Assembly: GCF_036321535.1 (NCBI RefSeq)
Contig: NC_087466.1
Location: forward strand, 2,790,001 to 2,854,000
Source of the DNA: Camelus dromedarius
Taxonomy: Eukaryota
DNA: 64,000 bases
Reading direction: 5' to 3'
Under the pieces are notes generated by a model. The model made no database searches and was not told where the DNA came from. It worked only from the letters and a program-made list of their open reading frames with translations. This document shows, piece by piece, positions 23,455-54,977 of this stretch. The translations under genes were made by a program, and so were the position numbers. Positions within the stretch are counted from its first letter, which is position 1. Each line of letters begins with the position of its first letter.

Positions 23455-24520
23455 CAGCTGCCCTGTGTGCTCTGCCTGGGCAGCCCTGCAGCTGCATCCT
23501 CCCCACAGACCTCCCAGGGAGCTGCGGTCTGGCCATCCCGGGGGCCCTTACGTGGACAATTGACCCAGGTTCAGAGGAACCCTTAGCTTCTCCTCACTTA
23601 CTCACAGGTTCTGGGTTGTGGTGGATGGGATGGCTGAGAGCTCCTGGGTCCCTCTTCTCTCCAGTTGGGCAAAGAGTCGGCCACGGTCTTCATGATACTG
23701 TTGGTACTTAATACCACCCAGTGCTTACTCCGTTTTAGGCACGTCTCTATTCTCAGTGCATCTAATTCTAGGAGTTAGATGTTATTAGTATTATCCTTAT
23801 TGTACGCATAAGGAAAGAGGTCACACAGGTGTAAAAGGCAGAGCCAGGTTTCAAAACTAGACAGCCTGGTTCCAGAAGCTAAGTTCTCACCCGCTGGCCT
23901 TAGGGCTTCTTCCTGCTTGCTCCTCCTGCCATCTTTTCCGGCTCCAAGTCCAGTCTGTGCTGACCCAGCGGGCCTCGGTGCCTGGGTGCCTGGGATGTAC
24001 GGTCACCAGATTCCGCACAAGAAGCAGCAGCAACTTCTGGGGTATGTCCCAAACTGGTAGCAGCGTCTGCCAGGTCCCCAGAGTCCTCACCTACGAGAGG
24101 AACAGTCAGCCCTTAGGGGTCCCGGCTGTGTTCTCCGGCTCCACGTTGGGCAACCCAGCCTTCCTGGCCATTGCAGGGCTGCGGGCTGAGGACAAGACTA
24201 GTCGTTACTGTCCCCTCTATGACACCACAGTTGAACCTGCATGGCTCAGAGCCAGACCTCAGGAGAAGTGAGGCCCACGCCTCCCGGCTCCTCCAGCACA
24301 CCAGGGACCTTGTCTGCTGGGTAAATCTTATTCCTTCTTGTCACCAGGATGGCTTGTAAGTCAGTTCTGGCATGTCTGTGCTTCTTGGACTCACATCTTA
24401 TTTCTATCGGCTCCAGGTACATCTGACTTTGTGGCTAACCATGGTGTGTTGATGACAGTTCAGCTGTGGCCTTTGCACTTGAAAGTTGTCTGGCTGGACC
24501 TAAAATCCTCAGCTTGGAGA

Positions 24521-27008: not shown

Positions 27009-27547
27009 ATGTTCTGGGCTCCTGTCCTGCTGGTGCTCCTGGCCCACTGCACAGGTGAGAACCGCCGGACCTCCCGGCTCCCCACTCCGGCCCTTCCCTT
27101 GCCCTGCTTTGCCTCAGCTGCCCACGTACTTTTGTGTCCCCAGGTTGTGGCCCTCAGCCGGTGCTGAATCAGCCACCGTCTGTGTCCTCGCCCCTCGGAA
27201 CCACCGTCCGCCTGGCCTGCACCCTAAGCGGTGACCTTGATGTCGGCATGTACAACATCTACTGGTACCAGCAGACGCCTGGCCACCCGCCACGGTTCCT
27301 GCTGAGATACTTCTCCCACTCAGACAAGAGCCAGGGCCACAAGGTCCCTCCTCGCTTCTCTGGATCCAAAGACATGGTCAAGAACACGGGCTATTTGAGC
27401 ATCTCTGAGCTTCAGCCAGAGGACGAGGCTGTGTATTACTGTGCTGTGGGGGCCCAGAGCCTGGAGCGGGAGATGGAGAGGAAGGAAGAAAGGGAGCCTG
27501 CTGCTCCGGGGCCCCTGGCACCCCAGGACACACTTACCTTGAACTGA
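27009..27547 (+). CDS. VPREB1: V-set pre-B surrogate light chain 1 (VpreB1), 149 aa
   Basis: Leader exon 27009-27054 (MFWAPVLLVLLAHCTG), exon 2 27144-27547: QPVLNQPP...LACTLSG...YWYQQTPGHPPRFLLRYFSHSDKSQG...PEDEAVYYCAVG plus acidic tail; no RSS follows. Confidence 0.97.
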
Positions 27548-29422: not shown

Positions 29423-29438
29423 GGCCACCAGGGGGCAA
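29423..29438 (+). promoter_or_regulatory. CTCF consensus motif
   Basis: GGCCACCAGGGGGCAA matches CCASYAGRKGGCR; motif only, binding not shown. Confidence 0.55.
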
Positions 29439-30625
29439 TGCAAGGTTAGGTCGACCTCCCGTGACTCCATGTGTGGTCTGCAGGCTGGCCACGGCCACCC
29501 CACCTGGGAGCGTTTGAAAAATGCCTCGTTTCAAGGCCACCCCAGACCTGCGGAGTCCGAACCCACATTTTCACAAGTTCCCTGGTGGTTCCATGCACGT
29601 GAAAGTCTTAGCACGCTCACTGCGCCCTCGACATCGGATTCAACCTCACTTGTTCAGACGCTTTCACTCAAACCACAAACGTGGTCAAGCAGGTGATGCT
29701 CTGGAGAGCTAAGGATGCTTTTCAGGAGCACCTGAAAGCTGAAAGCCATGGAACAGGCATGCCCGGTACCCACAGCGTGTGCTCACCTCCTGGGGCAGGT
29801 CTCGGGCTCCATCTGGTTCTGAACTGCGGGCCCCTCCCCCAGCTCAGCCCCTGCTGTTTGGCCATTTCGACCACCCTTCAGCTGTGGCTTCACAGCCCTG
29901 ATTCCCAGATTGCAGTCTCCTGGGAGCCCCACTCCCAGCTGCATCCATTGCCCTCTCCCTGGATGAGTTCCCACCCCACGCCCCTGACCCTCCGCTTTCT
30001 CAACCCGCAACCTGCGGGACCCAAGAGCCTCTCTCCCTCGCTTCCCAGGAGACAAACAGGGATATGGCACTGCCAGCGATTCAAACTGCCTCCTGCAGGG
30101 ACCACTGGGTGAAAGGGTCTGGCTTGTTCTTTGTGAGTGTGTTTAGACCCAGGCCTAGGAAATTCCTGAAATGTAAACGACCCTCAATAAATGCAGATTC
30201 CAAGGGAAGTATGACTGGGGCCAGGTAGCAGGGCAGCAGACATCACAGGGGAGCAGCTGGGCTCTGCTCCCACTTCTGCTCTGGTGGCTCTGAGATGCCT
30301 GGCGGGGGTGCTGACGAGAGGAGGTGTGTGGATCCCCCAAATCTGACCCTCCTGGGAAGCACTGGCTCCACCCAGCCCTGAGGCTAGTTCTGGGTCTGAC
30401 CACCTCTCAGACCCAGAAGCAGAATGCACCACCCTTGAGGCAGGAGGGCAGAGGAAGAAGCCCTCCAGAGGACAGAGAGCCTCGTGAGAGGGCCCCGCTC
30501 CACCTGCTTCTCGTGGGATCAGCCCCTCAGATGCACTGGAGCCCACAGCAAAGACAGGAGGGGTCGGATTAGTGTGAGCCAACAAGAAGAGGGTCTGGGG
30601 GAGCCTTGCCCAGCTGCAGGGCTCC

Positions 30626-31120
30626 ATAGTCTAGACCCCTTCCTGCTCCCCCTCCTCAGTCTCTGCCCAGGCCCTGCCCACAGGCTCAGCACCCACAGGG
30701 CCCTGGGTGGGGCCTGCCCCAAACCCAGAGCTCAGCCTCGGGGCGGGTCCCCCTGGGAATGGGCGCTTCATCGTCAAGCCCCCTCTCCCCTCCTCTCCTA
30801 TGGACTGACCCAGCCACCCTAAGTGTCCAGTGGCTCCTGGACAGACGTCCAAGGTGACCTGCTCCTGAGATAACAGGGATAAGCAGGTACCTTGGTACCA
30901 GCAGAAGCCGGGCAGGCCCTGGTGCTGGGCGTCCATGAGGACAGCAGCCGGCTCTCAGGGGTCCTTGACTGCTTCTCTGGCTCCACTCGGGGAACACGAC
31001 CTGACAGTCAGCAGTGTCTGCACAGAGGACGAGGCTATCACAGTACCTACCACAAAAGTGGAAGCAGTTTACAGTGACTCCCAGTGACACAGACAGAGAG
31101 GGACATGTGGCACAAAACTG
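30626..31120 (+). pseudogene. Ig lambda variable pseudogene, IGLV3-like, with degenerate RSS
   Basis: Leader relic ATAGTCTAGACCCCTTCCTGCTCCCCCTCCTC (ATG changed to ATA); V3-type intron; V exon from 30796 TCC TAT GGA CTG ACC CAG CCA CCC TAA (SYGLTQPP*), ...VTCS*...WYQQKPG...EDSSRLSGVLDCFSGS...EDEA, with stops and frameshifts; CCCAGTG (31080-31086) + 25 nt + ACAAAACTG. Confidence 0.88.
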
Positions 31121-31296
31121 CCCGCCCAGGCCTGGCGCTCAGTCCGTGGCCACCCTTCCCCCACCTCCATGCCAGATGAAGACAGGCCTACTCTTTCCCC
31201 GCTCTGCAGCCTCGGCTAAGTCACTGCACCTACGCAAAGGCCCTCACCGCCCCCGTCTGAGACATGGGGATGACAACCACCATGCCATGGAGTTAG

Positions 31297-31720
31297 CTGT
31301 GTGAGCCAGGGTTCTCCAGAGGAACAGAACCAACAAGGGGTGTGTGTGTGTAAACAGAGAGAGATTTATTTTAAAGCATTGTTTATATGCGTGTGGAGGT
31401 GTGAGTCCAAAATCTGTAGGGAGGGCCAGCAGGCTGGAGACCCAGAAAAGAGGTGCAGTTTGAGTCTGTCTGCTGCAGAATTCCTTTTAGCTCTGGGAGG
31501 TCTGTCTTTGTTCTATTCAGCCCTTCAACTGATTGAATGAGGCCCACCCACTTGAGGGAGAGCAATCTTCTTTACTCAAGGCATTGATTTAATGTTAATC
31601 CACTGATTTAAACGTCAACTTTATCCAAAAACACCCTCACAGATACATCTGGACTAATATTTGACCAAATATCTGGGCACTGTGGCACAGCCAAGCTGAT
31701 ACATAAACTTAACCATCACA
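31297..31720 (+). mobile_element. MLT2-type (ERVL) LTR
   Basis: gccagggttctccagaggaacagaaccaac...ttcaactgattgaatgaggcccaccca...cagccaagctgatacataaacttaaccatcaca. Confidence 0.8.
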
Positions 31721-32711
31721 CTGGCCTTAAATAAACCACCTCAGATGAAACCTCTAGACCTCCAGGCTTTGGAGAATGTTTCGCACCTTCCACAATAGCA
31801 GAGACCACCCCCAGAGGAGGGCTATAGAGCCACAGAGTAGGTTCAGTGACCCCAAGACCCTGGAAGTTTCTAGAACATTCACACTTGGGACCTGGGGACA
31901 ACGGACCTGTATGTCTGCTCTGGAGATGACCTGGGAGAGAGGAGTCCTGCTGGCCTGTGGGATGGAGAGCGGTCAGGGGCTGACCAGCAGGAGGCGGGGG
32001 CTCCCTCTGACTCGGAAGCAGGGCAGAAATGACTGGACGTGACGTACCTCTCTTGGGGAGTAAAAGGGGGTCAAACCTATGGGGGGGGTGTGTTTGACAC
32101 AGAGATGAAACTTGTGAGACACTGAACATGGTGCATGAAACACCAGTTTTATAATTAAATCACGATTCCCAGACTGGAACCCTGGCTTCCTGCTAAACCT
32201 GCAGCTGTTTCCTCCCTCCCCCTCAGCTTCCCCCCTGCCCCCCATGCAGGGCTGGTCAGAAGAGGAACCCAGCCCACTGAACTCAGGCCACTCCTTTTCT
32301 ACAGGCACCCAGCCACCCTCCACGGCCTCCCTGTGCCCCCAGGGAGAAGCTCCACAGCCAGGAGTGCCCTTAGGGAGCCAGACCAGGAGCAGGTGTGCCC
32401 CACCCAGGGTCTCAGGGGTCGGGGCTGTAGGGGGCTGCGGTGCAAGGCAGTTGAGGCCCGGATCTCAACCACAACAGAGCAGATGGCAGATGTCCCGCTG
32501 GGAGAGGCCCCCAGAAGTAACGGCCATGGGCCCTGGAGGGGGCCACGCACTGGGGCCAGGAGTGAGAAGGCCCAGGGGGAGACTGAGGCCACGCGGGCTG
32601 GACGCGCTGGGACAGCCACAGCCAGCTAGAGAGGCTGGGGTCACCTGCCAGCCCCCTCCAGGGAGCCCACGACAGCTTGTCAGCCAGAGGTACCTTTGAC
32701 CCTGAGGGCGA

Positions 32712-35700
32712 ATGAGACCCAGGACAGGCCAGCTGGGCCATGACATCCCCAGGGGGCAGCACTGGCCTCTAATCCTGCTAGGCCTGGCAGTGGGTGCCCA
32801 TGGCCTGCTGCCCTCGACAGCGGCACCGCCGAACAGGGCTCCCCGCACGGAGGCCTCAGCAGAGAGCAGCCCTTGGAGCAGGTGGGACAGGTAAGGGGCC
32901 AAGTGAGTCATGGCGGGACATGAGGGTCCCTGCAGCCCAAACTGTGAGTGGGGACAGAGAGGGGCAGTGAGGGGAGAGGGGAGGAGCCGCGGGAGAGGAT
33001 GCCCCTGGGTGGGCAAACAGTAGCTTTATGTGAGTGATGACATTTTGTCCAGTGTGGGTTTGTTTGCATCCATTTTTATTTTTTCTATTGTATTAAAATA
33101 TTAGTTATCTTAATTACTGAGGTCTCTGGCACTTCTTCAACTTTGCACCCAAGCCTAGGGCCTCGCCCTCCTCGCCCTGGTCCTTGGGGCAGAGCAGAAA
33201 AGGGAGGCAGGGCAGGACATCCGCAGGGGGTGGCTGCTGTCATCCTAGGGTGCCCAAGCCTCAGGTGATGGGCCAGCTCCCTGCCCTTCCCCTCACTGGG
33301 CGGGCACTGGTCCCTGGAGCACCACACTGTGTGGTGGGGGGAAACTTCCTTGGTGTCCCCAGGTCCCTGGAGCCTGAGCCAAGGACCATCAGGCAGGGCT
33401 GTCTCCTGGGACTAGCCCCCAGGAGCCAGAGTCCACCCGGGGAGCAGATGCCTCCCTGGAAAGGCCCAGGAGAGGGTCTGTGGGGGCCACAGTCTGCCCC
33501 TCTTCCTCTGTGACCCCAGCCTCCTCCTCTCTGCCATGGAGAGTGGGTCAGCACCTGTGGGCATCAGGTCAGGCTGGCATCGCAGTGCCCTGCAGGGACT
33601 GCAGAGCAAAGGCGGGGGCCAGGAGGACATGGGGAGAGATGGACCTCCCCCATTGGGGTCAGGCCTTGTGCTGGGGCTGGGGTTCCAGAGGAATGAGATC
33701 TGGTCGCAACTCAAGGTCCATGGGAAGAGGTGGCCAGGTGACAACTACATGCAATGTGATGCCTGCAGGGCAGAGGGGCCTCCGTGAGGATGGAGTACAA
33801 GTGTGCAGATCCACCTGGGTGAGGGAGCGCAGGCACAGAGCGCTCAGGGAGCTCCCGGGGGTCTGCGTGGTGTGGGAGACCTGAGAGGAGGCAGCAGAGG
33901 TGGCCAGGCTCAGACCTGGATGAGATGTCCTGGGAGGACAGACCTCACCTGGGGAGTTCTGGGGGACTTTTGCAAGGAAACGCGACCAGACTTGGGTGGG
34001 TGGGAAATCAGAACTAGACAGACCTCGGGGTAGGGGGCCAGGTGATGTCCCAGGCAGAGTGGACAGAGAGGTGGACAGATTCAGGAGGTGGGAGGAACAG
34101 GAAAGGGAGGAGCCAGGATGTCCCCTTGGCTCTTTTGCTGGGGAATTAAGAGAACGCTGTGTCCTGCATTTTAACAAAATGGTCCAAGAGAAGCAGTGGT
34201 CTCTCCCAAGAATGTCCTCTCANNNNNNNNNNNNNNNNNNNNNNNNNNNNNNNNNNNNNNNNNNNNNNNNNNNNNNNNNNNNNNNNNNNNNNNNNNNNNN
34301 NNNNNNNNNNNNNNNNNNNNNNNNNNNNNNNNNNNNNNNNNNNNNNNNNNTGAATGGATGATGGAGGGATAATGGATAATGGATGGATGATGAATGATGG
34401 ATGGAAAGTCAGAAAGACAGTGCTCTGAGAGATCAAAGAAGGCTTCACAAAAGATGTGGAACTGAACTATGTCTCAGTGGGTGGAGACAATCGGGCAGGG
34501 TGTCCCCACATGGGAGCACAAGGAGTCAGGAATGACTTGGTGTCCACAGGCCCAGCGAGGAAACCACCTGGCTGGACTGTGGGAAATTGTGGGGCAGGAA
34601 CACTCAGAGGCCCTAAAATGAGGCCAGGAGAGGTCGGGCAGGTCCGAGCCAGCTCAGGACTCCCTCTGTCGCATCACATGGCTACCTGCCGGCACGCAGC
34701 CCTCAGCATCTCCATCAGCACTGAGGATTCAGGGGTGACCAGGACAGCCTCGGGTGGGAGACACACTGGGTGACTCCAAGGCGTGGGAGGCACCTGCCTA
34801 GGACAGGGGGCTGGGGACAGAGATGTCTCTGGGCCATGGGCTCACCCGGGGTGCTCTGGCCTCTAGGGGGCTGGCTGCTCCCTCCCCCAGCCCCAGGACA
34901 CAGCCCCCCCACTGCAGCCCTGTGCCCATCACGCCCAGCAGGTCACCATTGCAGCCCGGTCCCCGGGGGGCAGGCCCCAGGTGCTGGCCCGGCAGATTTT
35001 GGTCTGAGCCTCAGTCACTGTGGTATGTCTTCGGCAGCGGGACCCATCTCACCGTCCTAGGTAAGTGGCTCTCATGCCTTTCCCAGCCTGTCCCATCCTC
35101 TGCTGTCTTGGGAAAGTCACTTTTCCATGTCTGGGGCTGCTCCCCCTCTGCCTTCCCACCCTTAAGGATCGACCCCCATCTTTCTCCACAGGGCCAGGGG
35201 AGGGGGGCTGGGCTTGGGGTGACCAGCAGAAAGAACCCCAAGAGCAGGGGCAGCTGCCTCCAGAGTCTGACAGTCAGACATGGCCAGTCCAGAGACCGAG
35301 GCCGGTTCTGATGGGGGGCACTGGGGTGGTCTTGGGGACAGTGCCCGAGCCCTGGGGTCTGGCTGAGGGCTGGATGCCCAGCCTGGGAGGGCCACACAGG
35401 AGGTTGGGGATTGGGGGTCTGTGACCCCAGCCTCCAGGGACACAGAGGGGCAGCCCAAGGGAGGCCCTTGGAGGGTGGAGAGTGGGGTCCCGCTCACTCT
35501 GGGCTGAAGCTCTCGGGTCCCCTGCTGGGCCAGGAGGACACAGGGACGCAGAGACACGAGTGAGACAGGGCGGGGTGACCAGCAGCCTGGCGCTCCCAGG
35601 ATGGTGGCCAGAAAGGAGAGGGATCCGTGGGGCAGAGACTCCTCTGTCCCTGGATCCCTGACCCCCAGGGGCCCAGGTGTCTCCCCTGCCCACGGGTTGG

Positions 35701-36701
35701 GCTCCTGCCAGCCTCAAAGGGCGCAGTACACTCAGGAGATGACAGACAGGAAGGGAAGGGGGGCTCGGAGCTGCTCGGCTGCCCCATAAAATCAGGGTCG
35801 TAGAGTCAGGGCAGCAGGGATGGGGAGACGGGCGGAGGGGCCTGGGGCTTTGGTGGGGAGGACCCAGGCCTCGCCGGGAGAGCAGAGGCCTGGCTGGGGC
35901 AGAGCTGATGCCTGACGGGGAGGAGAGGCTCTAGGACCCACCGTGAACAAGGCTCTGGCTCGGGGCCACCCCGCACGACCTCAGGATCGTCCTGGCAGCC
36001 TGAGTGGGGAACCTAGTTCAACTAGGAGGCAACTGGGCTCTGGAAGAATGAAGTGAGATGGGGGCCTGATGCTGGGCTGAGGGCTCAGGATGTCAAGGTC
36101 AATTCCAAATTCAGACTCCAGGGCCCAGGAGGAAGGAGGGGAGCTTCCTGGTCACACACGGGGAGATGGAGGCTGCAGGTGGGACGACTCGGCTGGGTCA
36201 CCTGGAAGAGTAACATCGAAGGGCTTCTGGGGGGCTGTCTGCTTCCGAGGGCTGAGTGGGAGAGGGGACGAAGAAGGAAAACAGGGCCACCAAGTGCACC
36301 ATCACAGAGGCCGTGATGGGTAGGGGAGCCCCACCCTGTGACTCCCACCTGCATCTCACACCCTCTTCTCTGTCCACACAGGTCAGCCCAAGTCCGCACC
36401 CTTGGTCACTCTGTTCCCGCCGTCCTCTGAGGAGCTCAAAGCCAACAAGGCCACCCTGGTGTGTCTGATCAGTGACTTCTACCCGGGCAACGTGACGGTG
36501 GCCTGGAAGCAAGATGGCACCACCGTCACGCAGGGCGTGGAGACCACCAAGCCCTCGAAGCAGAGCAACAACAAGTACGCGGCCAGCAGCTACCTGACCC
36601 TGTCGCCCAGCACGTGGAAGTCTCACCGCAGCTACAGCTGTCGGGTCACGCACGAGGCGGGCACCGTGGAGAAGAGAATGGTCCCTGCAGAATGTCCTTA
36701 G
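32712..36701 (+). CDS. IGLL1: Ig lambda-like polypeptide (lambda5 surrogate light chain; IGLL1/IGLL5 type), 205 aa
   Basis: Exon 1 32712-32890 (MRPRTGQ...[14 protein letters not shown]...SRWDR), exon 2 34942-35060 ([28 protein letters not shown]), exon 3 36382-36701 ([19 protein letters not shown]...PAECP*); 618 nt in frame. Symbol chosen from adjacency to VPREB1; exon 2 is IGLL5-like. Confidence 0.9.
34995..35022 (+). other. 12-bp-spacer recombination signal sequence 5' of the J segment
   Basis: GATTTTGGT - CTGAGCCTCAGT (12 nt) - CACTGTG, immediately followed by J-lambda coding GTATGTCTTCGGCAGCGGGACC...CTAG|GTAAGT. Confidence 0.85.
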
Positions 36702-36804
36702 GTCCCTGAGCCTCCCCCACCACCCTCAGGGGGCCTGGAGCAGCAGGACCCTCCCCTCTCACCCTGGTCCACCCAGCCCTTCTCCCTGCACCCAGTCAAC
36801 TCAC

Positions 36805-36810
36805 AATAAA
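36805..36810 (+). terminator. IGLL1: IGLL1 poly(A) signal (AATAAA)
   Basis: About 100 nt after the stop codon, as in C-lambda genes. Confidence 0.8.
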
Positions 36811-38050
36811 TTGTCCTCATTGTCAATCCAAAATCGTGCTCTCTGCTCATTTTTTGCTTGTATTTAACTTGCAACCTCTCTGGGATTCTAGGGGTGGAGT
36901 GTGGGGACTCCTAGGCACCCAGTGGGAAGGTAACCCAAGGGGAGAGGCTCAAGGTCTCACTGAGGTGGGGGGAAGGGGGGAGGGGGGAGCAATTCCCAGG
37001 AAACTCTCCAGGACACATCCGCCCTCCCCTCCCTCCCACTCCTCCTCCAGCACCAGGCCCTGCCCACCCCTGTCACCTTCCTGGCTGGAGCTGCCCATGG
37101 CTGGTGACCTTCAGATAGGCCCTCTCTGCCAGCCCTGGTCCGGACCTTTTACCCCTTCCTTCATCCCACCATGTCCTTTCTTTGCAGAATGACTGACACC
37201 ATCTTGGTTCCTTACAGTTTCTCCTGTCCTTCTGCTGACCCTCCCCAGGACTGTTCTGTGCAGCGAATCACTTCTCTTTCATCAGGACCTTGTAGTTAAT
37301 AGAGATTGTTTAAAAATCATGAGGACGAGGCAGCCTCTATGCTCTGTTAGCCCCGGAACAATGACGAAAACCTTCTGTCACCTATTCCTGCTGCCCATGA
37401 CACTAGTTACCCACCCGTAAATCTTTACCTACGAGTGCACGTCCTGTTTCCGAGCACCTACCCGCAGACCCTGTTGTCCCAGGTGCCCCTCAGCGGCATG
37501 GAATGCCTCTGCAGGTGCTTCCCGATAGTGGTCTGCCCCACCCCAACCCACCCTGGGAGTCATCTGACAATAAGTTCAAACACCAGGCCCCAAATGCAAG
37601 TCCCTTTGGCTTCTGCCCCTCCCATCCCCCACAGCCTTCTCCACTGCCTCTCCTTCCCCCAACACCTTCCCCTCCAACCAGACTAAGCTGGAAGTTTACA
37701 TCCCCAAAGGCCACCTGCCTTCTGCCTCTACCCTTTTGCTATTGCTGTTCCCTTTGCTGGCAGGATATTCCTGGTCCCCGTCTGCCTGACAGTCAGCTCC
37801 CCGAAGCCCTGCCGTCCGCTCTTCCCGTGTGACCTTCCCTGACCTTGCAAGTGGGCAACGCTTGAACCACAGTTGATCTGGGCTGAGAGGAGCTGCTCCC
37901 AGGCCTCTCCTACCCGCTCCCACCTCCCCAGGGCTGCAGGAGGCAGGGCAGGGATGAGGCCTTGTGCCTGGGCCCTGGACACAGCTGCTGGCCACGGTTG
38001 CACCCCCTCAGTGCCTCAGCTGGGTACTGGGCGGCTGTCATCCAGCTCCT

Positions 38051-38194
38051 TTTTAAATTAAAAAAAATTTTTCTTGGAGGGGAGATAATTTGGCTTACTT
38101 ATTTACTTACCCTTGGAGGAGGTGCTAGAGATTGAACCCAGGACCTTGTATGTACTAAACAAGCACTCTACCACTTGAGCTACACCCTCCCGCC
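38051..38194 (-). mobile_element. tRNA-derived SINE (Vic-1-like) with 13-bp TSD
   Basis: TSD TCATCCAGCTCCT at 38038-38050 and 38195-38207. Confidence 0.9.
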
Positions 38195-38233
38195 TCATCC
38201 AGCTCCTCCGTGACTCCTGATCAACTTACCGCA

Positions 38234-38353
38234 GGACTGACCCCAGCTCTGCCCATTCATGGGACTGACTGTCCCGAGCTCTGCCTGGTCGTGGGACTGA
38301 CTGTCCCCAGCTCCATCTGGTTGTGGATTGGTTGTCCCCAGCTCTGTTGCAGG
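38234..38353. repeat. ~32-bp minisatellite, about 4 diverged copies
   Basis: Units GGGACTGACTGTCCC(C/G)AGCTC...GT at 38261-38292 and 38293-38324 with diverged flanking copies. Confidence 0.7.
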
Positions 38354-41300
38354 TGCCATCTCTCTGCCTTGAGGACGGTGACCCTGGCCGAGAGTTGCCC
38401 ATGGCTCGTGCTTCACTTCCTGTGATCCCCAGACCACCTGGGAGATGGGTGCTAGTACCCCTGACCTCAGGGACGAGACAGAGGTTCTCAGAGCTGACAC
38501 AGTCCGCCCTGGTCCTGCAGGTGCTCAGGGCTGCACACAAGCTGACCTGCCCCCAGGCTCTTTCCAAGGCTCCTTGGCCCTGTGTGATGGGTCACTCATT
38601 CACTCACTCACTTATTCATTCAACAAACCCTCAGCGAGTACTACTGTGGGCCAGTGCTGGGGGCAAGTAGACAGGACCACCTGCTCACTGCGGGGGGTGG
38701 GGTGACACTGCGGAGACCGCTGCTGACCCCACCCCATCCTTAAGCCCTTAGATCAGGTCCCCTCTCATGGCTGACCCTACCCCATCCTCGATTCCTAGGT
38801 CAGCTTCCTGCCCACCGCTGACCCCACTGTGTCCTTGAGCTCCCAGGTCAGCTCCCCGCCCAGGGAGCATCTCCTGCACTCGTGGGATAAGATTTCATCC
38901 ACCCGCCTGGCCCCATGTGGGGGATGCCCCCAGCGGCTGACACTGGGCACCTCTCCAGGCTTATCACAGCCCCTCATGGAGCCTCAAAGTCCCTGTTGGG
39001 GCCACCATTGCCCATTTCACAGAGGAACACTGACCATGAGGGGCTCACAGGGCCTGCGTGCCCAGCTCAGAGCCGGGGCAGCCCCTGCAGGACTAGTGGC
39101 CCCAGGGCACAGCGTGGTGGAGACCAGGTAGGGATGAGTCCTCTGGGGAGCCTTGTCCCAGGGGAAATGGGCAGGAATCGGGGAGACTGTCTCAGGGCAG
39201 CCAGGACAGGGGCCAGGGGAGGGGTTGGGTCATCAGGCACCCTGTGTCCACTCCGGGGATAGAGTAGCTGACAGTCAGCATGACCCCAGGACACCACCAC
39301 TTGTGTGTTTCCCCACAAGCCCCCACTTCGTGGTGACACCGTCTTCCTGTAGCCACATCAACACCCCAGGTCCCTCCTGCTCCTTCGCATTCGGCCTGGG
39401 GACATGGGATGTCAAGGCTGGTGTCCCCTGTGCCTGGGTCTGTGCTGGCACCACAGCCTGAACCACCCTCAGGTCCTCACCAGGATGGACCATCCCTGCC
39501 CACCCAGGGCCCGGCCTGCCAGGGAGATGTCGGGGTCTCCTGAGCATCCTGGGAGGAGGGAGGATGCTTCGGAGGGTCCTGGGCCTCGGCTACAGGGCGT
39601 TGCGGCTGGGGAAGGGGGACCCCAGGCCAGTCTGAGCCCACCCCAGGTTTTCTGGTCGGGCAGGGTTCCTAGTGTATATGGACATGGCCCAGAGCAAAGC
39701 CACCGCCCAGCAGCCCTTTCCTGAGCCCATACATGTGCGGGGACCTCAGTGGTGGCAATGTAGCCCAGCTGGGGGCTCAAGACAGTGGTGGCGGACAGGG
39801 AACTGGCTGGTAGTGAGATAGATGGTGTTGTGCAGGATGGGCTCCCGCACTGGGAAGACCACCCGGGGTGGGGGGGGGGGCGGGGCAGGGGTGGGGGGTG
39901 CCTGGCACGGAGGCAGCCAGGGGCCAGGAGAGCCCTGACTCCAGGTTGGTGGCTGGGGACCCGTGTCCCCTCTGTGCAGTCGGGTTGGGGATAAGGGAAC
40001 CTCACTCCCTGGAGGGACAGGAGGGACGGTCAGATGGAAAATGGACGTTTGGCTCATCTCTGTGTGTGACTGTTGTGGCCGTTGGCATTGGCCTGTTCTG
40101 GCCCCAGCCGGCCTCAGGCCAGCACCCCTGGGCTCCCCGCGTGCCCCACACCCTCACCCCCTGCAGCTGCCCTGGCGAAACCAAGAGGCCCTGACACTGA
40201 CAAAATAGCCAGGAAACCCCGCCTGGCTCGGCCCTGGCAGCATGTGCCGCCCTCTACCTGGGGTGGGGGGAGGGGTGGCTCCAGTTCTGGAAGCTTCTGC
40301 CAGCCCAGCTGGAGAAGGGGGCTGCATCCCAGCATCCAGGCCTGAGTAGGGCAGAAATCATACCAATCAATTGTCGGAAGCAGCATTTTCTGTCCTGAAT
40401 TGTGAGTTTGTGGCACCCTCTCCTTGGAGCCCCCAGGAACTTTTCTAAATGCTGGGCACGGAGCTGCAGCCAACCGCACAGCCAGACACTTGGAGCTCAG
40501 GGGAGCCCCAGGTGGGCAGGGCTGGCCAGGGCTGGCCAGGGCTGGCCATGGGACACTGTGGGTCACACCTCACCTCCTGCCCCCACATCTGGGACTCTTT
40601 GCGAGTGAGTATTGGGCCAAGTACGGGGACAGAGAGAGAAATGGGGACCCTCACAATTGCTGCCCTAGGAGCCCTGCCTCTGGGGTAACAATGAGGGCCC
40701 AGAAGCATGACTATCCTTCAAGAAGCTGGTCACTCACTCATCTGACCATCCGTCCATCCATCCCTCAGGCCCCTGAAGACTGGGGCAGGGTGGGCTCTTG
40801 GCTTCTCATGCCCCAGGCAAGGTGGGTTGGGTCCAGTGAAGGTCAAAGTCAGTCCTGGAACAGGGCTGCTCATCCACAACGGGGGTGGGGGCTGTGGCCC
40901 TGGGTGCCTGGGGAGACTTGTCCACACACAGCCTGGAACTCGTGGCACAAATGAGACCCCCTGGGAGGAAGACAAGGGGAGGGGGGTCCTGGGGTCCTGG
41001 GTGGTCAGCGAAGGGGTCTGGGAGCAGCAGCAACTTCAGCCACCCAACAGGGTGGGCTTGGGGATTAAAGGAGCCAATGCCTGTGACGTGCCTGGACCAT
41101 AGCGACCCTCACCCATCCCAGCCATTGCTGTCACCACCACCAGCACTTGCCTGGGCCTGTCTTTGACACGCTGTGTGATCCTGGGCAAGTTGCTTCCTTT
41201 CCCTGGGCCCCAGCCTTCCCCTCTGCTCAGGGAGAGCTGGGTAAGGGGCCCCAAGGGCCAGAAATTGTAGGAAAACTAGGATTCCTGGACGAAGGGGTTG

Positions 41301-41464
41301 GTACTGGGGCTCTGGCTTTGGAGGGGCAGGGAAGCCCCAGGTAATACAGGGATGGAGTGGGTTTGGTCGCCTCCTTCAGCTCTGGTGGCCCTGCTGGCAG
41401 CCCCCTGGGGTCTGCAATCTAAAGCTAACCCTACCTTTGACCTAAACCAGAACTCCAGGTGACA

Positions 41465-41496
41465 AAAGAGGAGAAGTAAGGGGAAGAGAAACCTAG
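41465..41496 (+). promoter_or_regulatory. Ig-lambda 3' enhancer lambdaB-like element (ETS-IRF composite GGAAnnGAAA)
   Basis: AAAGAGGAGAAGTAAGGGGAAGAGAAACCTAG, 24/32 ungapped identity to the mouse lambdaB probe as recalled; CAGGTG E-box at 41456-41461. Confidence 0.6.
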
Positions 41497-41891
41497 CCCG
41501 TGGTCAGCGGGGTGTGGGACGGGTGACAAACAGGGCCAGGTGCGGCCTGGGATGGGGACGGGGCAGCTTCAGGGCTGTAGCCGGATGTTTGCAGCTCACA
41601 GAAGGAAGCAGAGCCCTCCCCACCCCCCACCGAGCCCCCTCCCAGCCCTGGACTGGGCCTGGTGCAGCTCCCTGGCTGCCTCCCCGCATCCTCTACAAGC
41701 TTCGTCCTGGGTCCTGGAATCCTGGAGAGCTGGACCCCAAGGGATCTCAATTCCCTCTGCCAGGACCCTCACTGACAGAGGAAAAGCTGCCACTGCCAAG
41801 GGTGTAGCCCCTTCCCAGGTTTGCCGACTCCGCATCTGATCCCCAGCCTAGTGCCTCGTAACTTCAAGGCTCTCAATAAGTAGCTTGGCAA

Positions 41892-41992
41892 GGGGCGAGT
41901 GTAGAGTGGTAGAGCACACACTTAGCCTGCGCGAGGGCCTGGGTTCAATCCCCAGCACCTCTATTAAATTTTTTTTTCTTTAATTAAAAAAA
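41892..41992 (+). mobile_element. tRNA-derived SINE (Vic-1-like)
   Basis: gtggtagagcacacacttagcctgcgcgagggcctgggttcaatccccagcacctc. Confidence 0.8.
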
Positions 41993-42320
41993 AATAAGCA
42001 GTTTGAAAGAGGGAAGGAAGGGATTGGTGGGTGGGTGGGTGTATGGATGGACGGAGAGGGAGGTAGATGATTAATCGATGGCTTGATTAGTGAGTGGATT
42101 GGTATGTTCATGGGTAGGTTAGTAATTAGATATGTGAGTGGATGGATGGATAGTTGGGTGGGTGGGGAGATCTAATTATTAGAAGCATAGTTCCCAGTCT
42201 CAAAACTTGCTAAAAGATAAAGTAACCAAAACAGTGTGGTATTGGCATAAAGATAGACATATGAATCCAAGCAACAGCATTGAGAGTGAGAAATAAAAAT
42301 ATATATCCATGGTCAATTAA

Positions 42321-42430
42321 TTTATTTTATTGTTTTATTTTTTAAAATTTTAATGGAGGTACTGGGGATTGAACCCAGGACCTCGTGCAGGCTAAGTGTG
42401 TGCTCTACCACTGAGCTATACCCACCCCAC
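42321..42430 (-). mobile_element. tRNA-derived SINE (Vic-1-like)
   Basis: ggaggtactggggattgaacccaggacctcgtgcaggctaag...ctaccactgagctataccc; flanked by CAATTAA repeats. Confidence 0.85.
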
Positions 42431-42449
42431 CAATTAAAAAAGAACACTA

Positions 42450-42985
42450 TTTTCTAGAGCAGTTTTAGGTTCACAGCAAAATTGAGCAGAAGATACAGAG
42501 ATTTCCCATATACCCGCTGCCCCACACATGCATCACCTCCTTTACCATCAATCTCCCTTACCAGAGTGGTGCATTTGTTACAACTGACCGAACTACACTG
42601 ACACAACACAGTCCAGAACTGTTTACATCCTGTACGTTTGGACAAATGTGTAATGGCACGTTTACCACTGTAGCTTCACGCAGAGAATTTTCACTGCCCT
42701 AAAGATCCTCTGTACTCCACCTACTCACCCCTCCTAACCCCCAACTCCTGGCAGCCACTGAGCTTCTCATTGTTTCCATACTGCTGACTTTTCCAGAATG
42801 CCAAATAGTCTGAATCATATAGTGGTAGCTTTCCAGATTGGCTCGTTTCACTTATGAACACACATTTAATGTTCTGCTAGGTCTTTTTGTGGCTTAATAG
42901 TTTATTTCTTTCTTTATTGCTGAATAATATTTCATTGTCTGGATGTACACTGTTTATTTATCCTTCACCCACTCTGAGACATCTT
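42450..42985 (-). mobile_element. Old L1M (MB/MC-type) 3' fragment
   Basis: gagcagttttaggttcacagcaaaattgagcagaagatacagagatttcccatatacc...gctgaataatatttcattgtctggatgtacac. Confidence 0.75.
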
Positions 42986-45900
42986 GGTTGCCAGCTCCAG
43001 CATCTCTGGGAGGTCTCAGAGCCTGGGCTGTCGGGCACAGATGTGCGGGAACAGCAAAGAGGCCAGCGGGGCTGGATCCAAGGAAGGGGGCAGGGCCCTC
43101 AGGGCCTTGCAGAGCAGGCTGAGCACCTTGTGATTTGTCCAAGTTTTCAAATGTACCTGGACAGCATCATGCCGACATACCTGCGCCTTCTAGCCTCTTG
43201 CACGTATGTCTCTAGGACTGGGAGCCAACCAGTCAAGTAGGGGGAGCCAGACAGTTCAGCATGTAGACACACAGCAGGTGCTGGCCGGACCGCAATGGCC
43301 GTTTGTGTGGACAGACATTGGACAATTCCTCTCCCTCCTTCACAAACACGGCCCCGGAAGCCCTGGGCATTCCTGGTGGGTGGGTCAGCACTTACTGGAC
43401 GGCTCATGCCCCCCTGCAACAGTGGGGACACGGGGGCGTCTATGTTGGGGTCACTGCGACCTTCAGCCAGCTCTGCAGAGCAGCTGGGCTCACTTACAGA
43501 CCCGGGTCCAAGCCGATCCTGGTCCCGTATCCACATTCCTCCTTGGATTGTGGACCCTGGACCTTGTCCCCAGCGGTGCGCATGCCCTGAGGCGTTAAGT
43601 GTGAACCAAGCGAGGCCCACGGGCGTCACTGGGTGGTCACTAAGCCCGTCCCCCCATCCTGGTTCCCATTCTGCCACCGCCTGGGATGACCCTGGGCTCC
43701 AGGCCTCAATGTCCAAGGGGCATCATTCGGAGGTCCCTGAATCTGCCATCTGGGGTCCCCTCCTCCAGGTCTGGGCGCTGGGTCCCCCTGCACTTCAGCG
43801 AAGGGACAGCGACCTCTGGCGGCCAAAGAGGGGGCGGCAAGCCCTGGAACCAGATGGGCAGGCCTGGGTTAGAGGGGAAGGGGTGGGGTGTTCCCCCTCA
43901 ACCCAGGGAGCACAGGGAGCCCCAGAGCCCCTCCTGGACCCACTCTCTGGGCAAAAGCTGGGTCAGGTGTGCCCACAGGGGGATCCCAGGCAGGTCTGGC
44001 TTCTGGCCTGAGAGTATCTAAGGCAAAGAGGAAGAGGAGGCAGTGGGTCAGCTTCTGGGGAGAAGCCAGTGCAGAGGTAGCTGCTTGGCCTCCTACAGGC
44101 GGGTGAGCACCGGGCAGGGGTGGAGGTCCTGCTGACCCCATCTCCGAACAGGCCAGGCTCATGCTCCACACTTAGACTTCAGGACTGCGCTGGGATCTCA
44201 GACAGGGTTCTCCTCCTACATCCTGGGGACAGTGGGGTCCTTCCCATTTGCCAAACTGGCCCATCCTAGGTTGAGGGGACCAGCCTGGGACAGACAGGTG
44301 ATGGGGAGAGGGGTACACGATCAGGGTCCCCACCTCTCTTTCAAATGACTGCATGGGTTCCCTCAGAAAGGGTGGACTGTTCCCTGGTTCTCACTCTTTG
44401 CTGCATCTCATAGTATTTGCTAAAAGGCAAAGCACTATGGAATGTTCTAAGTTATGTTGAACAAGCTTTGGGAGTAATAAAGAACAGAAACTTAAAGAAA
44501 TATTTCCAAATACTAATAGTATATTCAGACCTCCAGTCCACCCAGAAGTGATGCTCACATGTGGACAGTAATTCACAGAGATGAGGTGGTGAGCATGACC
44601 TTTTGGGGTTAAATGAGTTAATATATATCAAATATTAAGATGAAAATAAATTATGCATAACTCTAAGCAATAATGTTAATGATAGGACTTCTCATGTAAG
44701 AAGAAGAATCACAGAAAGAACCATCAAACAAAATCTAACAATTCGCTGTTTATAAGTTACAGATATGTAGCAAAATATACACAAATTTTAAAATAAAATG
44801 CAGAGCTAAATAAACACTCATGCATATGAAAATTCAAAAAAAGTAAGGGGCTTCAATTATATTTGGAAAAGAGAAGTTGAAGCTTGAAGCATTAAAAGAG
44901 GCAAAGAGGGTACTCAAAGGCACAATTTTTCAGAATATCACTATTAAATTATTACGCCCCAAATATGATAAGTTACTTGCTGATCATTTACCCTGCCTAT
45001 TTCTTAAGAAGATAACTGCACCACTAACACAGTAACGGCATACATAAGATAGAAACAGAAATGAAAGCAAAACAGAAATACATGAAGAAAAACAAGATCT
45101 GACTATGACTTGACCAGGTGAATGAGTATTCTTAAGTACTTTGGGGTCACAGAGCCCATCAAAAATGTGGTGAATGCTACAGACCACCCCCTCCCAGAAT
45201 AATTCATTCGTCCACGTATCCACAAGGCTTTGTTCAGTCCCCAGGGGTCCACAACCTCAAAACCCTTGCCCGCTCATGGACTGCTAGACAGTCGTTAGAC
45301 CCCAGATTAAGAACTCTGAAGTAAAGAAAAGTTAGTGAAAATATGGATTTGAATAAAATAATTTAAAAATTGAGTTAATGAATAGAATTGATGGAGTAAA
45401 AACACATTTCCTGAGAGTGCACAGAGGCTTCATAAAAGCCGGTAACATACTCCAGCCCAGAGAGCTTCCATGGACGCTTAGAAATGTTCATACCGTGTAA
45501 AATAGAAACAGCAATGACCCCAGAAGTCACCGCTTTGCAATATTAAAAATAATAATACTTGGGCCAAAGGGAAAGTCTTAATACAATAGCAAAAAATATT
45601 GCATATCAACCTTATGGAGCACAGAAAAAGCTCTAACTATAAGAAAAAAAATCATAGGCCAAAGTACCACATTTACTAGAAACATTGAAAACAATAAACT
45701 GTATCTAAATAATTAATCTTAGAAATGTAAACTATTAATTCAAAAAAAAAAAAAAAAAGGAAAGGAAAGAACATGTACTTTGACAAAACAATTCCATCAG
45801 GAAACAATCAAGAACTGGTGTTTTACAACACCCAACAACATCTGTGAAAAGAAGGAAAAAAGGTAACACAATAAACAAAAACACACAATGAAATTCAAGG

Positions 45901-48343: not shown

Positions 48344-49690
<1,347 letters not shown>

Positions 49691-51299
49691 TGTGAGTCCA
49701 GGCTCCCCGCCAGCACCTGGATTTCTGGGGGACACACTGACTGCTCTCACAATCTGAAAAGAAAACAAGGGACACTTTCGAGTCAGCAAGTCAAACACTC
49801 AGCATGTGCTGCAGTCTTAGTGGATGGAACCAAAGAAGAGGATGCCATCTTGCCCCTGTGGTGATCGTCACCGAGTCGGAGACAAGTCTGACTTACCAGA
49901 AACAACTGCCAGGAAGACAGACAGACAGACAGACAGAAAACACCACACTGTGAGACTTGAAAGGCTCAGGATGTTCAGAAAAGTGGGCGGGGACAGGAAG
50001 TGGACATGTTCTGGAAAAGGGGCAAGACTCTGGCTACTGGAGGATGTTGGGGATGGGGTCTTGATGGGAAAGAGGGCCCACCTCCCTCCCACACTCAGTT
50101 GGCTGCACACCCTCTAGCCCTGTGTCCCAGCCAGAACCCTGGGAGGCAGTCTGGTCCTTCTCACTCTCTCACCCACACACCTTGCCCATCCATTTCCTGA
50201 GGGGTCTCTGCCTCTTCCTCGGTGCCACTGCGCAGCTCAGGTCTCAGTGTGACTCGCCTCCCATTGGCTGCCCATCTCCAGCATCTGCTCCTCCCTCCAG
50301 TCTGTTCTTTGCATGGACGCCAGGTTCAAATGCCCCAAACACAGGCCTGATGGTGTCACCCGCCTTACAGCAGCCCAGCCCCTCCACGCCCGCTGCTTCT
50401 CCTCCCACACACCCCTAATCTTCCAGCGTGACAACTCCTGTGTGCCTCCCAACTGGTCCCACTGTTTTCTCAGATGGTCACCTGCTCATCCTTCCAGATT
50501 CCGTCCAAAGGTGCCCCCTCCTCCACACCCTCAGACTGACAATCTCAGGCCGCCGCCTCTGTGACCTGTGGAGCTCAGTGTGCACGTCCATCACAGCACA
50601 CACCACCCTGATGGCCAAACAAATATGGGGTGACTCTCCCCACCATCGCCTGCACCCTCCCCAAGGGCGAGTACAGGACCCCCCACACTGGAATCCCCAG
50701 ATGCCAGCACAACCACACGATCTACACACACACACATCAGTTAACTAAATAAATGACCAAATGAAGGAAAAGCCATTTGTTTTTGTGTTCAAATTGATTG
50801 CCACTTTTTTTTTTTTTGGCCAAAGAACTCTTTATTCAAGTAAGTCAATTACCTGGGAGATAAAAATAAATAAAGCAGAGCTGCCCCGTAGAGGGGGTAG
50901 AGGGGACAGTTTCGCAGGGACGAGGGAGGAGGCCAGACCATCCCACTTGGCCCCCCACCCCACTGTGGAGGCCCTGAGGGAGCCCTGCAGGACCCCATTC
51001 AGAAACAGCTGTGTGGCCATGTGGGCTCAGGGGGAACACCTCAAGTACCTTTGTGATGACAGCTCGAGTTTACTGAGCACCTACTGTGTGCTGGGCACTA
51101 CCAGGACTTTTACAAGCATATCTCATTTACTCCTCATGACCCCGTACAAAGGTACTAGTCCCCTTGCACTGAAGCTCAGAGGGTAACTGCCTCAAAAAAA
51201 CCCAAAACCCTAAATTAATTAGAACAATCATGATGGAACTCATTCCTATTTGGATTCTTTTTTTTAATGAATCTTAAAAAGACCAGGTGTGGGGGGGAG

Positions 51300-53875: not shown

Positions 53876-54977
53876 CTAGAATCCGTAGCCCACGGAGCAG
53901 TAATAATCTGCTTCGTCCTCTGGCTGCACGGGGCTGATGGTCAGGATGCAGGCGTTATGGGCTTTATCTGTGGCTGCTGAGAAGCGATCAGGGATGTCCG
54001 GGGGCCGGTGGTAGTCCTCCTCTGAGCGATAGTAGATGAGGTAGCGGGGGGCGCTGCCTGCCCGCTGCTGATACCAAGACACACCGTAGTCCCCGACGGT
54101 GGCGTAACGGGGGCTGAGCATGCAGGAAAGTTGGGCCACTTGGCCTGGGAAGACCAGCAGTGCCTCTGGCTGGGTCAGGGCTGGGTGGGAGACTGAGAGA
54201 CAGACACACTCAGGCCTGGCCTGGGCCCCTTCCCTCCTGCCCCACCCTACAAAGCCTTGGTCAGACTCCTGGGAGAATCCAAAAACTCACAGCCCCGTGC
54301 CACTGGATCAGCACTGGGTGGAGCACTGATTTGGCACCCCCTCAGCCCCCATTAGTGCCATGTTCACAAGGATCTATGTTCAGTTAAGGACCTAGAGTTC
54401 AGAGAGTGGGACTGGTGGCCTCTGTGTTCTTCTGCTGCCCTCCCTCATCCCTTACCCTGCTGACCCCTAAAACTTTGGTTACACTGGCTCTTCCAAACCC
54501 TGGCTACAGACTGACCACCCCCAGAGAGGCTCTTGGGCTGTTACTACCCATTAGCTGAGCCTCAGGCCACTGGCCCTTCGGGACTTTCTCAGTGTTAGTG
54601 TGTCCTGAGGTTCTGTCGGGACCAGATCACACCAGTTTCCCCTCTGTATAACCCAAAAGGTGACTAGTCTCTGAGACCCCAGAGAGTCAGTGTCAAAGGG
54701 ACCCTAGCAATCTGGTCATGCACAAATGGGGAAACCGAGGCCCACGCAGAAGAGTGACCTGCCTAAGGTCTATGGCAGAGCCATCTGCAGTTTATCTTCC
54801 CCCACCTCAATGTCCCTTCCAGAACCCTCCCCACTGCCCATAGCAATTTGCTTCCATTCAAGGGCTTTCTGGAACCCATGCTGTGTCCCACCCCACCCCC
54901 AGGTGAGCCGGGCCCAGGGAGGGCTCACCTGCCAGGAGGGCCCCAGCTAGGAGGAGAGCCAGACGACAGCAGACCAT
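53876..54977 (-). CDS. VPREB3: V-set pre-B surrogate light chain 3 (VpreB3), 121 aa
   Basis: Leader exon 54929-54977 (MVCCRLALLLAGALLA), exon 2 53876-54192: LLVFPGQVAQLSC...DYGVSWYQQRAGSAPRYLIYYRSEED...DRFSAA...PEDEADYYCSVGYGF*. Confidence 0.96.

Follow-up and report, generated by a model that had tools for sequence, protein, structure and literature searches.

A dead V-lambda3 gene and colinear non-coding DNA link the dromedary IGLL1 (lambda5) locus to the 3' end of the rearranging immunoglobulin lambda locus

The closest described relatives of the locus analyzed here are mouse Igll1 and human 14.1, IGLL1 (lambda5) genes of three exons (unique region; unique region with a J-like strand; C-lambda-like domain) in the order TOP3B-VPREB1-IGLL1. 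Their frames of ~205-213 amino acids carry a GPRCWP motif, a J-like strand, a C1-set domain and a C-terminal Cys. That human 14.1 and Ig lambda 1 resemble each other across three exons was already known in 1991 (Evans and Hollis, PMC2118775). Human IGLL5 (germline Ig lambda 1) consists of exon 1, a joining (J) segment with a 12-bp-spacer recombination signal sequence (12-RSS) and a constant (C) exon. It lies inside the main immunoglobulin lambda (IGL) locus, downstream of a variable (V) gene of the V3 type, with more J-C units after it, and its J rearranges to live V genes. Among the lambda-like genes of man, conversion of 14.1 with 16.1/16.2 has been described (Conley 1999, cited in PMC6249383), and the human orphon IGLV(IV)/OR22-1 is listed with IGLL3P (PMC9443941). 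Here we analyzed a 64-kb stretch of Camelus dromedarius contig NC_087466.1 (the window) with a focus on positions 29423-43822, which make up the canonical dromedary IGLL1 locus; this assignment is part of an explanation of the region that, taken as a whole, we hold with good though not complete confidence.

The camel locus shares its three-exon structure, its position and its protein features with mouse Igll1 and human 14.1. Unlike the IGLL1 loci of vole and lemur, it retains a V-lambda3 pseudogene between VPREB1 and exon 1, together with an intact RSS heptamer in exon 2. It also resembles human IGLL5 in the arrangement exon 1, J with a 12-RSS, and C, downstream of a V3 gene, and its exon 1 and non-coding flanks are homologous to the lemur IGLL5 counterpart; unlike IGLL5, the camel unit stands alone next to VPREB1, has a single J-C and is accompanied by dead V genes only. 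As a dead V-lambda gene outside the main locus that adjoins a lambda-like J-C gene, the V pseudogene resembles the V-lambda orphons of IMGT, the likeness to the human ones being one of description. The main features of the locus are as follows.

29425-29437, plus strand: strict CTCF core CCACCAGGGGGCA, a predicted site ~1.2 kb upstream of the V relic
30626-30670, plus strand: leader relic of the V-lambda3 pseudogene, ATG changed to ATA, aligning to lemur and Kogia V3 leaders
30796-31079, plus strand: V-exon relic of the same pseudogene (SYGLTQPP followed by a stop), with stops and frameshifts
31080-31118, plus strand: decayed RSS with a 23-bp spacer (23-RSS; CCCAGTG, 23 bp, GCACAAAAC), the heptamer lacking the essential CAC
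31952-32052, plus strand: remnant (~100 bp) of a spacer element of the main IGL locus, 84.5% identical to Kogia L007 22980-23082
32712-32890, plus strand: IGLL1 exon 1 (start codon, signal peptide, unique region), donor GT at 32891
34223-34350: assembly gap (N) inside IGLL1 intron 1
34942-35060, plus strand: IGLL1 exon 2 (unique-region tail and J-like strand), containing a 12-RSS at 34995-35022
36382-36701, plus strand: IGLL1 exon 3 (C-lambda-type C1-set domain, C-terminal Cys), stop TAG at 36699-36701
36781-37139, plus strand: 3' flank homologous to DNA downstream of main-IGL C genes, 73% identical to Kogia L007 38428-38778
36805-36810, plus strand: polyadenylation signal AATAAA

Splicing of exons 1, 2 and 3 by script yielded an open frame of 205 amino acids without stops, so that the three-exon IGLL1 gene at 32712-36701 is intact. 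The exon-2 acceptor at 34942 was placed from the reading frame and from agreement with orthologous gene models. Inside exon 2, the 12-RSS consists of the nonamer GATTTTGGT (7/9), a 12-bp spacer and the heptamer CACTGTG (7/7), and the J-C intron measures 1,321 bp (35061-36381). Thus exon 1, a J with an RSS, a 1.3-kb J-C intron and a C exon are all present on the plus strand in the order given by the original prediction. The exon-1 protein is 62% identical to that of minke and horse IGLL1, the exon-3 protein ends in VPAECP, and an alignment with 16 orthologues showed conservation of GPRCWP...YVFG.GT.LTVLG. The C region matched lambda light chains in the PDB at E ~1e-58; the Pfam C1-set domain scored E 6.5e-31 on a near-identical dromedary protein (P0001). 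When the exon-2 region was used in a protein word-index search, the sole match was a Camelus dromedarius protein, 100% identical over the exon-2 stretch, which is held under two NCBI records, as lambda-like polypeptide 5 and as lambda-like polypeptide 1. A RefSeq model from Camelus ferus (P0003, 449 amino acids) joins VPREB1 to IGLL1 through translated non-coding DNA 5' of exon 1; this fusion is an annotation artefact.

For comparison we gathered IGLL1-type proteins from many orders, using first exon 1 and then a full-length whale protein as query. The 3' ends of two main IGL loci, those of the lemur Eulemur rufifrons (L004) and the pygmy sperm whale Kogia breviceps (L007), were compared with the camel locus, as were the following IGLL1 loci.

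minke whale (L001): colinear with camel 29.0-43.0 kb; spacer between V relic and exon 1 (82.6%)
horse (L002): colinear with camel 29.2-40.5 kb; spacer between V relic and exon 1 (78%)
panda (L003): spacer present upstream of exon 1
lemur (L005): VPREB1 7.4 kb upstream of IGLL1; colinear around VPREB1 and from exon 1 on
bat (L006): colinear with camel from VPREB1 to intron 1
beaver (L008): rodent IGLL1 locus; spacer present between V relic and exon 1
vole (L009): rodent IGLL1 locus

In panda, the exon-1 region is tandemly duplicated (6503-7321 and 9470-10827 of L003), with both exon-1 frames open.

The original prediction held that lambda5 lies in a preserved copy of a whole V3-exon 1-J-C segment, and comparison with the main IGL loci bears this out. 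The lemur main locus carries a live V3 gene, an IGLL5-type exon 1, J1-C1 and J2-C2, and camel sequence matches it in four blocks.

30795-31136: matches the lemur V exon
32318-33533: matches lemur exon 1 with ~400 bp upstream and 640 bp downstream
34382-35746: matches the lemur J with both flanks
35874-36950: matches the lemur C with flanks

The Kogia main locus (four V3 genes, an exon-1-like sequence, J1-C1 and a second C) gave the same chain against camel, with an additional match in the 3' flank. In both main loci an ~800-bp spacer element separates the last V from exon 1. Its remnant in camel is 87% identical to minke IGLL1-locus sequence (L001 7114-7216). Between horse and Kogia the alignment runs unbroken from the V through its RSS flank, the spacer, exon 1 and the 5' intron to J and C, and continues for ~2.4 kb into the 3' flank. 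Camel exon 2 shares 90% identity with J1 plus its upstream flank in the main loci of both lemur and Kogia. The shared order is therefore a weakly alignable CTCF site, the last V3, the spacer, an IGLL5-type exon 1, J1, C1 and the 3' flank. Hence colinear homology to the 3' end of IGL extends into non-coding DNA beyond the exons, whose absence had been named beforehand as the result that would speak against the prediction.

The V-lambda3 pseudogene expected beside lambda5 was found with leader, V-exon and RSS relic, all of them decayed, ~1.6 kb upstream of exon 1. Its layout is that of an IGLV3 gene (leader, intron, SYELTQPP-like V-exon, 23-RSS), but not that of a functional one: the V-exon has stops in every frame and a 4-bp deletion ahead of the second Cys, and the codon for that Cys is lost. 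It is 68.9% identical (E 8e-44) to the last V of the lemur main locus, which translates as SYELTQPPSVSV..., and 73.4% identical to the minke orthologue. The relic occupies the same place in the minke and horse IGLL1 loci; a 125-bp fragment of it was detected in bat, and an inverted leader with a half-exon fragment in beaver. Camel, minke, horse and bat relics have in common the 4-bp deletion and an odd sequence on the side of complementarity-determining region 3. The change of ATG to ATA is common to the camel and horse leaders, and the minke leader keeps ATG. The shared lesions indicate that the V gene was dead before Cetartiodactyla, Perissodactyla and Chiroptera split, giving an age of roughly 80-90 million years. 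The beaver copy suggests that the boreoeutherian ancestor already had the relic.

Exon-wise trees had been proposed as a check; together with flank trees, they grouped the sequences by lineage and not by locus. In the trees built from the spacer, from exon 1 plus flanks and from J plus flanks, lemur IGLL1 joined lemur IGL (100%), and camel and minke IGLL1 joined Kogia IGL (98-100%). A single IGLL1-locus clade was rejected by the approximately unbiased (AU) test for the J region (p 2.6e-6) and the exon-1 region (p 1.5e-61). Around exon 1, lemur IGLL1 and the lemur main-locus unit are 87% identical, and the 2 kb that span J and C are 95.5% identical, non-coding DNA included. These two lemur units lie 2.4 Mb apart in opposite orientation, and their predicted proteins differ by one C-domain residue. 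We read the clustering by lineage, on the evidence of the alignments and trees, as a probable trace of recurrent gene conversion between IGLL1 and the main-locus unit. Since both positions are conserved, independent duplications in each lineage are less likely than conversion. The exchange would resemble that of human 14.1 with 16.1/16.2, in that lambda5 trades sequence with paralogous J-C units; unlike the human case, the partner would be exon 1-J1-C1 of the main locus, and the exchange would span kilobases of non-coding DNA and recur across mammalian lineages.

Conversion may also bear on the RSS inside a coding exon. The exon-2 heptamer CACTGTG is intact in camel and minke IGLL1; mutated forms read CACTATG in horse and beaver IGLL1 and CACCCTG in panda, and lemur IGLL1 has a 3-bp deletion there. 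J1 of the lemur main locus has the same heptamer and spacer as camel exon 2. Exchange with main-locus J1 thus plausibly maintains the RSS within camel exon 2.

Because the sequences follow lineage and not locus, the trees were rejected as an orthology test, and orthology must be called by position. The camel gene lies among the following neighbours.

1 to ~21.7 kb, minus strand: TOP3B; best match topoisomerase 3-beta in the PDB, E 4e-33
23951-24217, plus strand: second V relic, of V-lambda1 type (QSVLTQ...SSSN...), between the TOP3B promoter and VPREB1
27009-27054 (leader), main exon to 27547: VPREB1; matches the iota chain of PDB 2H32, E 1e-56
48344-49798, minus strand: C2H2 zinc-finger gene, ZNF70-like by position, with C2H2 fingers
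53876-54139, minus strand: VPREB3, with a V-set domain

The gene order is TOP3B-VPREB1-IGLL1-ZNF-VPREB3; as the zinc-finger gene and VPREB3 follow IGLL1, the single 64-kb window holds VPREB1, IGLL1 and VPREB3. TOP3B-VPREB1-IGLL1 beside the block that holds VPREB3 is the usual eutherian arrangement, in a synteny set that includes camel (2022; PMC9614664). The V1-type relic has a 123-codon frame without a stop and has lost Cys23 and Trp41. Its best PDB matches are IGLV1-type light chains, Pfam V-set gave no match to it, and it was not found upstream of bat VPREB1.

We conclude that the camel gene is IGLL1 by position, and is neither IGLL5-like nor co-orthologous to IGLL1 and IGLL5, both of which had been entertained in the original prediction. 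A locus of the IGLL5 kind would open a J-C array and have functional IGLV genes upstream of it; the window holds a single J-C unit with one C exon in 64 kb, the V genes nearby are all dead, and the unit sits in the conserved position between VPREB1 and the zinc-finger gene. Co-orthology is contradicted by the separate exon-1-like sequence that whale and lemur each carry upstream of J1 in the main locus. As both have it, the two paralogues predate the split of those lineages. The Kogia copy (L007 25640-25900) is degenerate, with ATG changed to GTG and several indels, and keeps its splice donor; the frame of the lemur copy is open. That the camel gene might nevertheless be IGLL5-like or a single co-orthologue, the first exon 1-J-C unit of a real but shrunken IGL locus, could be argued from its order of V3, exon 1, J (RSS) and C, which matches the human IGLV3-1-IGLL5-J1-C1 layout, from a slightly higher score of the camel unit against lemur main IGL than against lemur IGLL1, and from the NCBI record that labels the protein IGLL5. 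However, the camel position is colinear with the lemur IGLL1 locus, 2.4 Mb from the lemur IGL J-C array, and IGLL1 is reported to be misnamed IGLL3, IGLL5, IGLL7 or VPREB1 in 25 of 40 genomes (PMC9614664). Together with the lone J-C unit, the dead V genes and the second exon-1-like copy in Kogia and lemur, this makes an IGLL5-like identity very improbable.

How the unit came to lie beside VPREB1 is less certain. We lean, by a modest degree, towards a founding duplication in which the 3' end of a rearranging IGL locus, its last V3 included, was copied beside VPREB1 and gave rise to lambda5. The V3 gene would have decayed after the duplication, and in pro- and pre-B cells the exon-1 promoter would drive transcription of the unrearranged IGLL1 unit. 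Recurrent conversion with main-locus J1-C1 would keep the paralogues alike and is the likely reason why a near-perfect 12-RSS persists in exon 2. By analogy with mouse and man, the J-like strand of the protein would complete the V domain of VpreB, and the lambda5 C domain would pair with mu CH1 in the pre-B-cell receptor. Several observations weigh against this account or restrict it. The V relic is absent from the lemur, vole and panda IGLL1 loci, and the spacer from those of lemur and vole. The groups for the AU test were named after the trees had been seen. Support for a V-relic clade is only 74/49, and for that reason the presence of the relic in the boreoeutherian ancestor is something that we only infer. 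The loci compared come from laurasiatherians, rodents and a lemur, with lemur and Kogia supplying the main IGL loci, and set no date on the founding event. For expression in camel there is only a hint, from shares of sampled words: 14 runs guessed to be RNA contained 0.41-0.56 of the words of a 401-bp stretch (45% of it exon 1), and the three of these that reappeared in a second search contained 0.05-0.06 of the words of a 1.9-kb stretch from V to spacer, shares that would fit spliced IGLL1 RNA and a silent V relic. Finally, with conversion active, the V gene and spacer could have been copied in later.

This last point leads to a different history, in which IGLL1 began as a copy of exon 1-J-C, and V3 and the spacer arrived later from the main IGL locus, around the time of the boreoeutherian radiation or earlier, whether in one long tract of conversion or by a second duplicative transfer, and then decayed. 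Conversion between the loci is demonstrably active and reaches non-coding DNA; the minke relic leader is 94.8% identical to functional Kogia V leaders and keeps the ATG, unlike those of camel and horse; homology between lemur IGLL1 and lemur main IGL ends 435 bp upstream of exon 1; and neither lemur nor vole has the relic. Yet the relic occurs in Laurasiatheria and in a rodent at the same place relative to the spacer, the 4-bp deletion is common to four lineages (camel, minke, horse, bat), and between camel and minke the relic has evolved like neutral flank (73% identity against 75-76% for the surrounding DNA). The absences can be explained by local deletions, as in panda, where the CTCF core survives on one side, and the spacer on the other, of the deletion that removed the V relic. 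We therefore consider a later addition unlikely. Another alternative is that the cluster on the TOP3B side is the stump of the ancestral IGL locus, whose bulk moved away, with VPREB1 and lambda5 born in situ. The V-lambda1-type relic upstream of VPREB1 would suit this, as would the placement of TOP3B at the 5' border of the IGL locus in apes (PMC13617356) and the position of human VPREB1 among IGLV genes, beside a V pseudogene (PMC8945572). On the other side, TOP3B-VPREB1-IGLL1 is reported to lie apart from IGL in armadillo, hedgehog, cattle and mouse (PMC9614664), and the main locus keeps its own set of last V3, spacer, exon 1 and J1, so that a duplication is needed anyway. The V1 relic is moreover missing upstream of bat VPREB1, and we regard the stump scenario as quite improbable. 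The founding duplication thus remains the history that we prefer. A bolder reading, possible but doubtful, would take the whole TOP3B-side cluster (V1 relic, VPREB1, CTCF, V3 relic, spacer, exon 1, J and C) as one fossil miniature Ig-lambda locus, in which a V gene became VpreB1 and the exon 1-J-C unit became lambda5; the two would have been born together, and the locus would have stayed readable for ~100 million years, partly through continuing gene conversion from the working IGL locus.

The assembly gap lies 1.33 kb past the exon-1 donor and 0.59 kb ahead of the exon-2 acceptor; being inside intron 1, it leaves the reading frame unaffected. In minke, horse, panda and lemur, the orthologous intron contains counterparts of both gap flanks, colinear and on the same strand, with 6.7, 14.4, 4.8 and ~8.1 kb, respectively, between the matching points. 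Judged by these alignments, the gap probably hides several kilobases of intron 1, so that the camel assembly probably understates the distance from exon 1 to J.

We also checked the regulatory elements that had been proposed for the locus. The 5' CTCF motif was confirmed: the core at 29425 is the only strict match within 29-44 kb, and an identical core with its flank is present in minke (L001 4285) and panda (L003 1361). The lemur main IGL has this core as well, 0.85 kb 5' of its last V, with a 37-bp flank that is weakly alignable (E 3.5e-4). Two further motifs had been proposed 3' of the gene.

41482-41491, plus strand: Ets-IRF composite element (EICE) or lambdaB-like motif GGAAGAGAAA, without support as an enhancer core
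43809-43823, minus strand: weak reverse CTCF-like motif, one base short of even a loose consensus

The EICE pattern has five matches in the window, which is chance level, and so the one at 41482 carries no weight; in minke it is broken, its GAAA reading GACA. From about 37.15 to 43.7 kb, camel showed no homology to any lemur or main-IGL sequence compared, the main-IGL loci used ending no more than 1.5 kb past the last match, with E-lambda itself outside the comparison. The suggestion of an enhancer is thus not supported. For the reverse CTCF-like motif the outcome was mixed. The motif itself fails the loose consensus, and its surroundings are conserved, the block 43764-43838 aligning to the lemur IGLL1 locus (L005 32687-32758) at 77% over 75 bp. 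From sequence motifs, a convergent CTCF pair around the V relic and IGLL1 is possible. Neither a V-lambda octamer nor a consensus nonamer turned up in a pattern scan of 26-44 kb.

Earlier publications cover the gene, its synteny and the kinship of its three exons with germline J-lambda1-C-lambda1, and the fossil described here is modestly new. Within the literature searched, the apparently new element is a dead, datable V3 gene, with a spacer, upstream of lambda5 in many mammals, which extends the known paralogy to the whole segment from V to C. Searches of the literature on OR22 orphons and on concerted evolution of lambda5 gave no account of a V relic 5' of IGLL1; its absence from vole may explain why it went unnoticed in mouse work. 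Two further points appear to be new: within each lineage, lambda5 and the main-locus exon 1-J1 unit are homogenized across kilobases of non-coding DNA, and a second V relic flanks VPREB1. These findings account for the repeated labelling of IGLL1 as IGLL5 by automatic pipelines, and they are a warning that exon trees cannot assign orthology in the IGLL1/IGLL5 family. They provide a concrete, testable picture of a surrogate light chain carved from a rearranging locus; if the fossil miniature locus is real, it would be a direct record of the derivation of the pre-B receptor light chain from such a locus.

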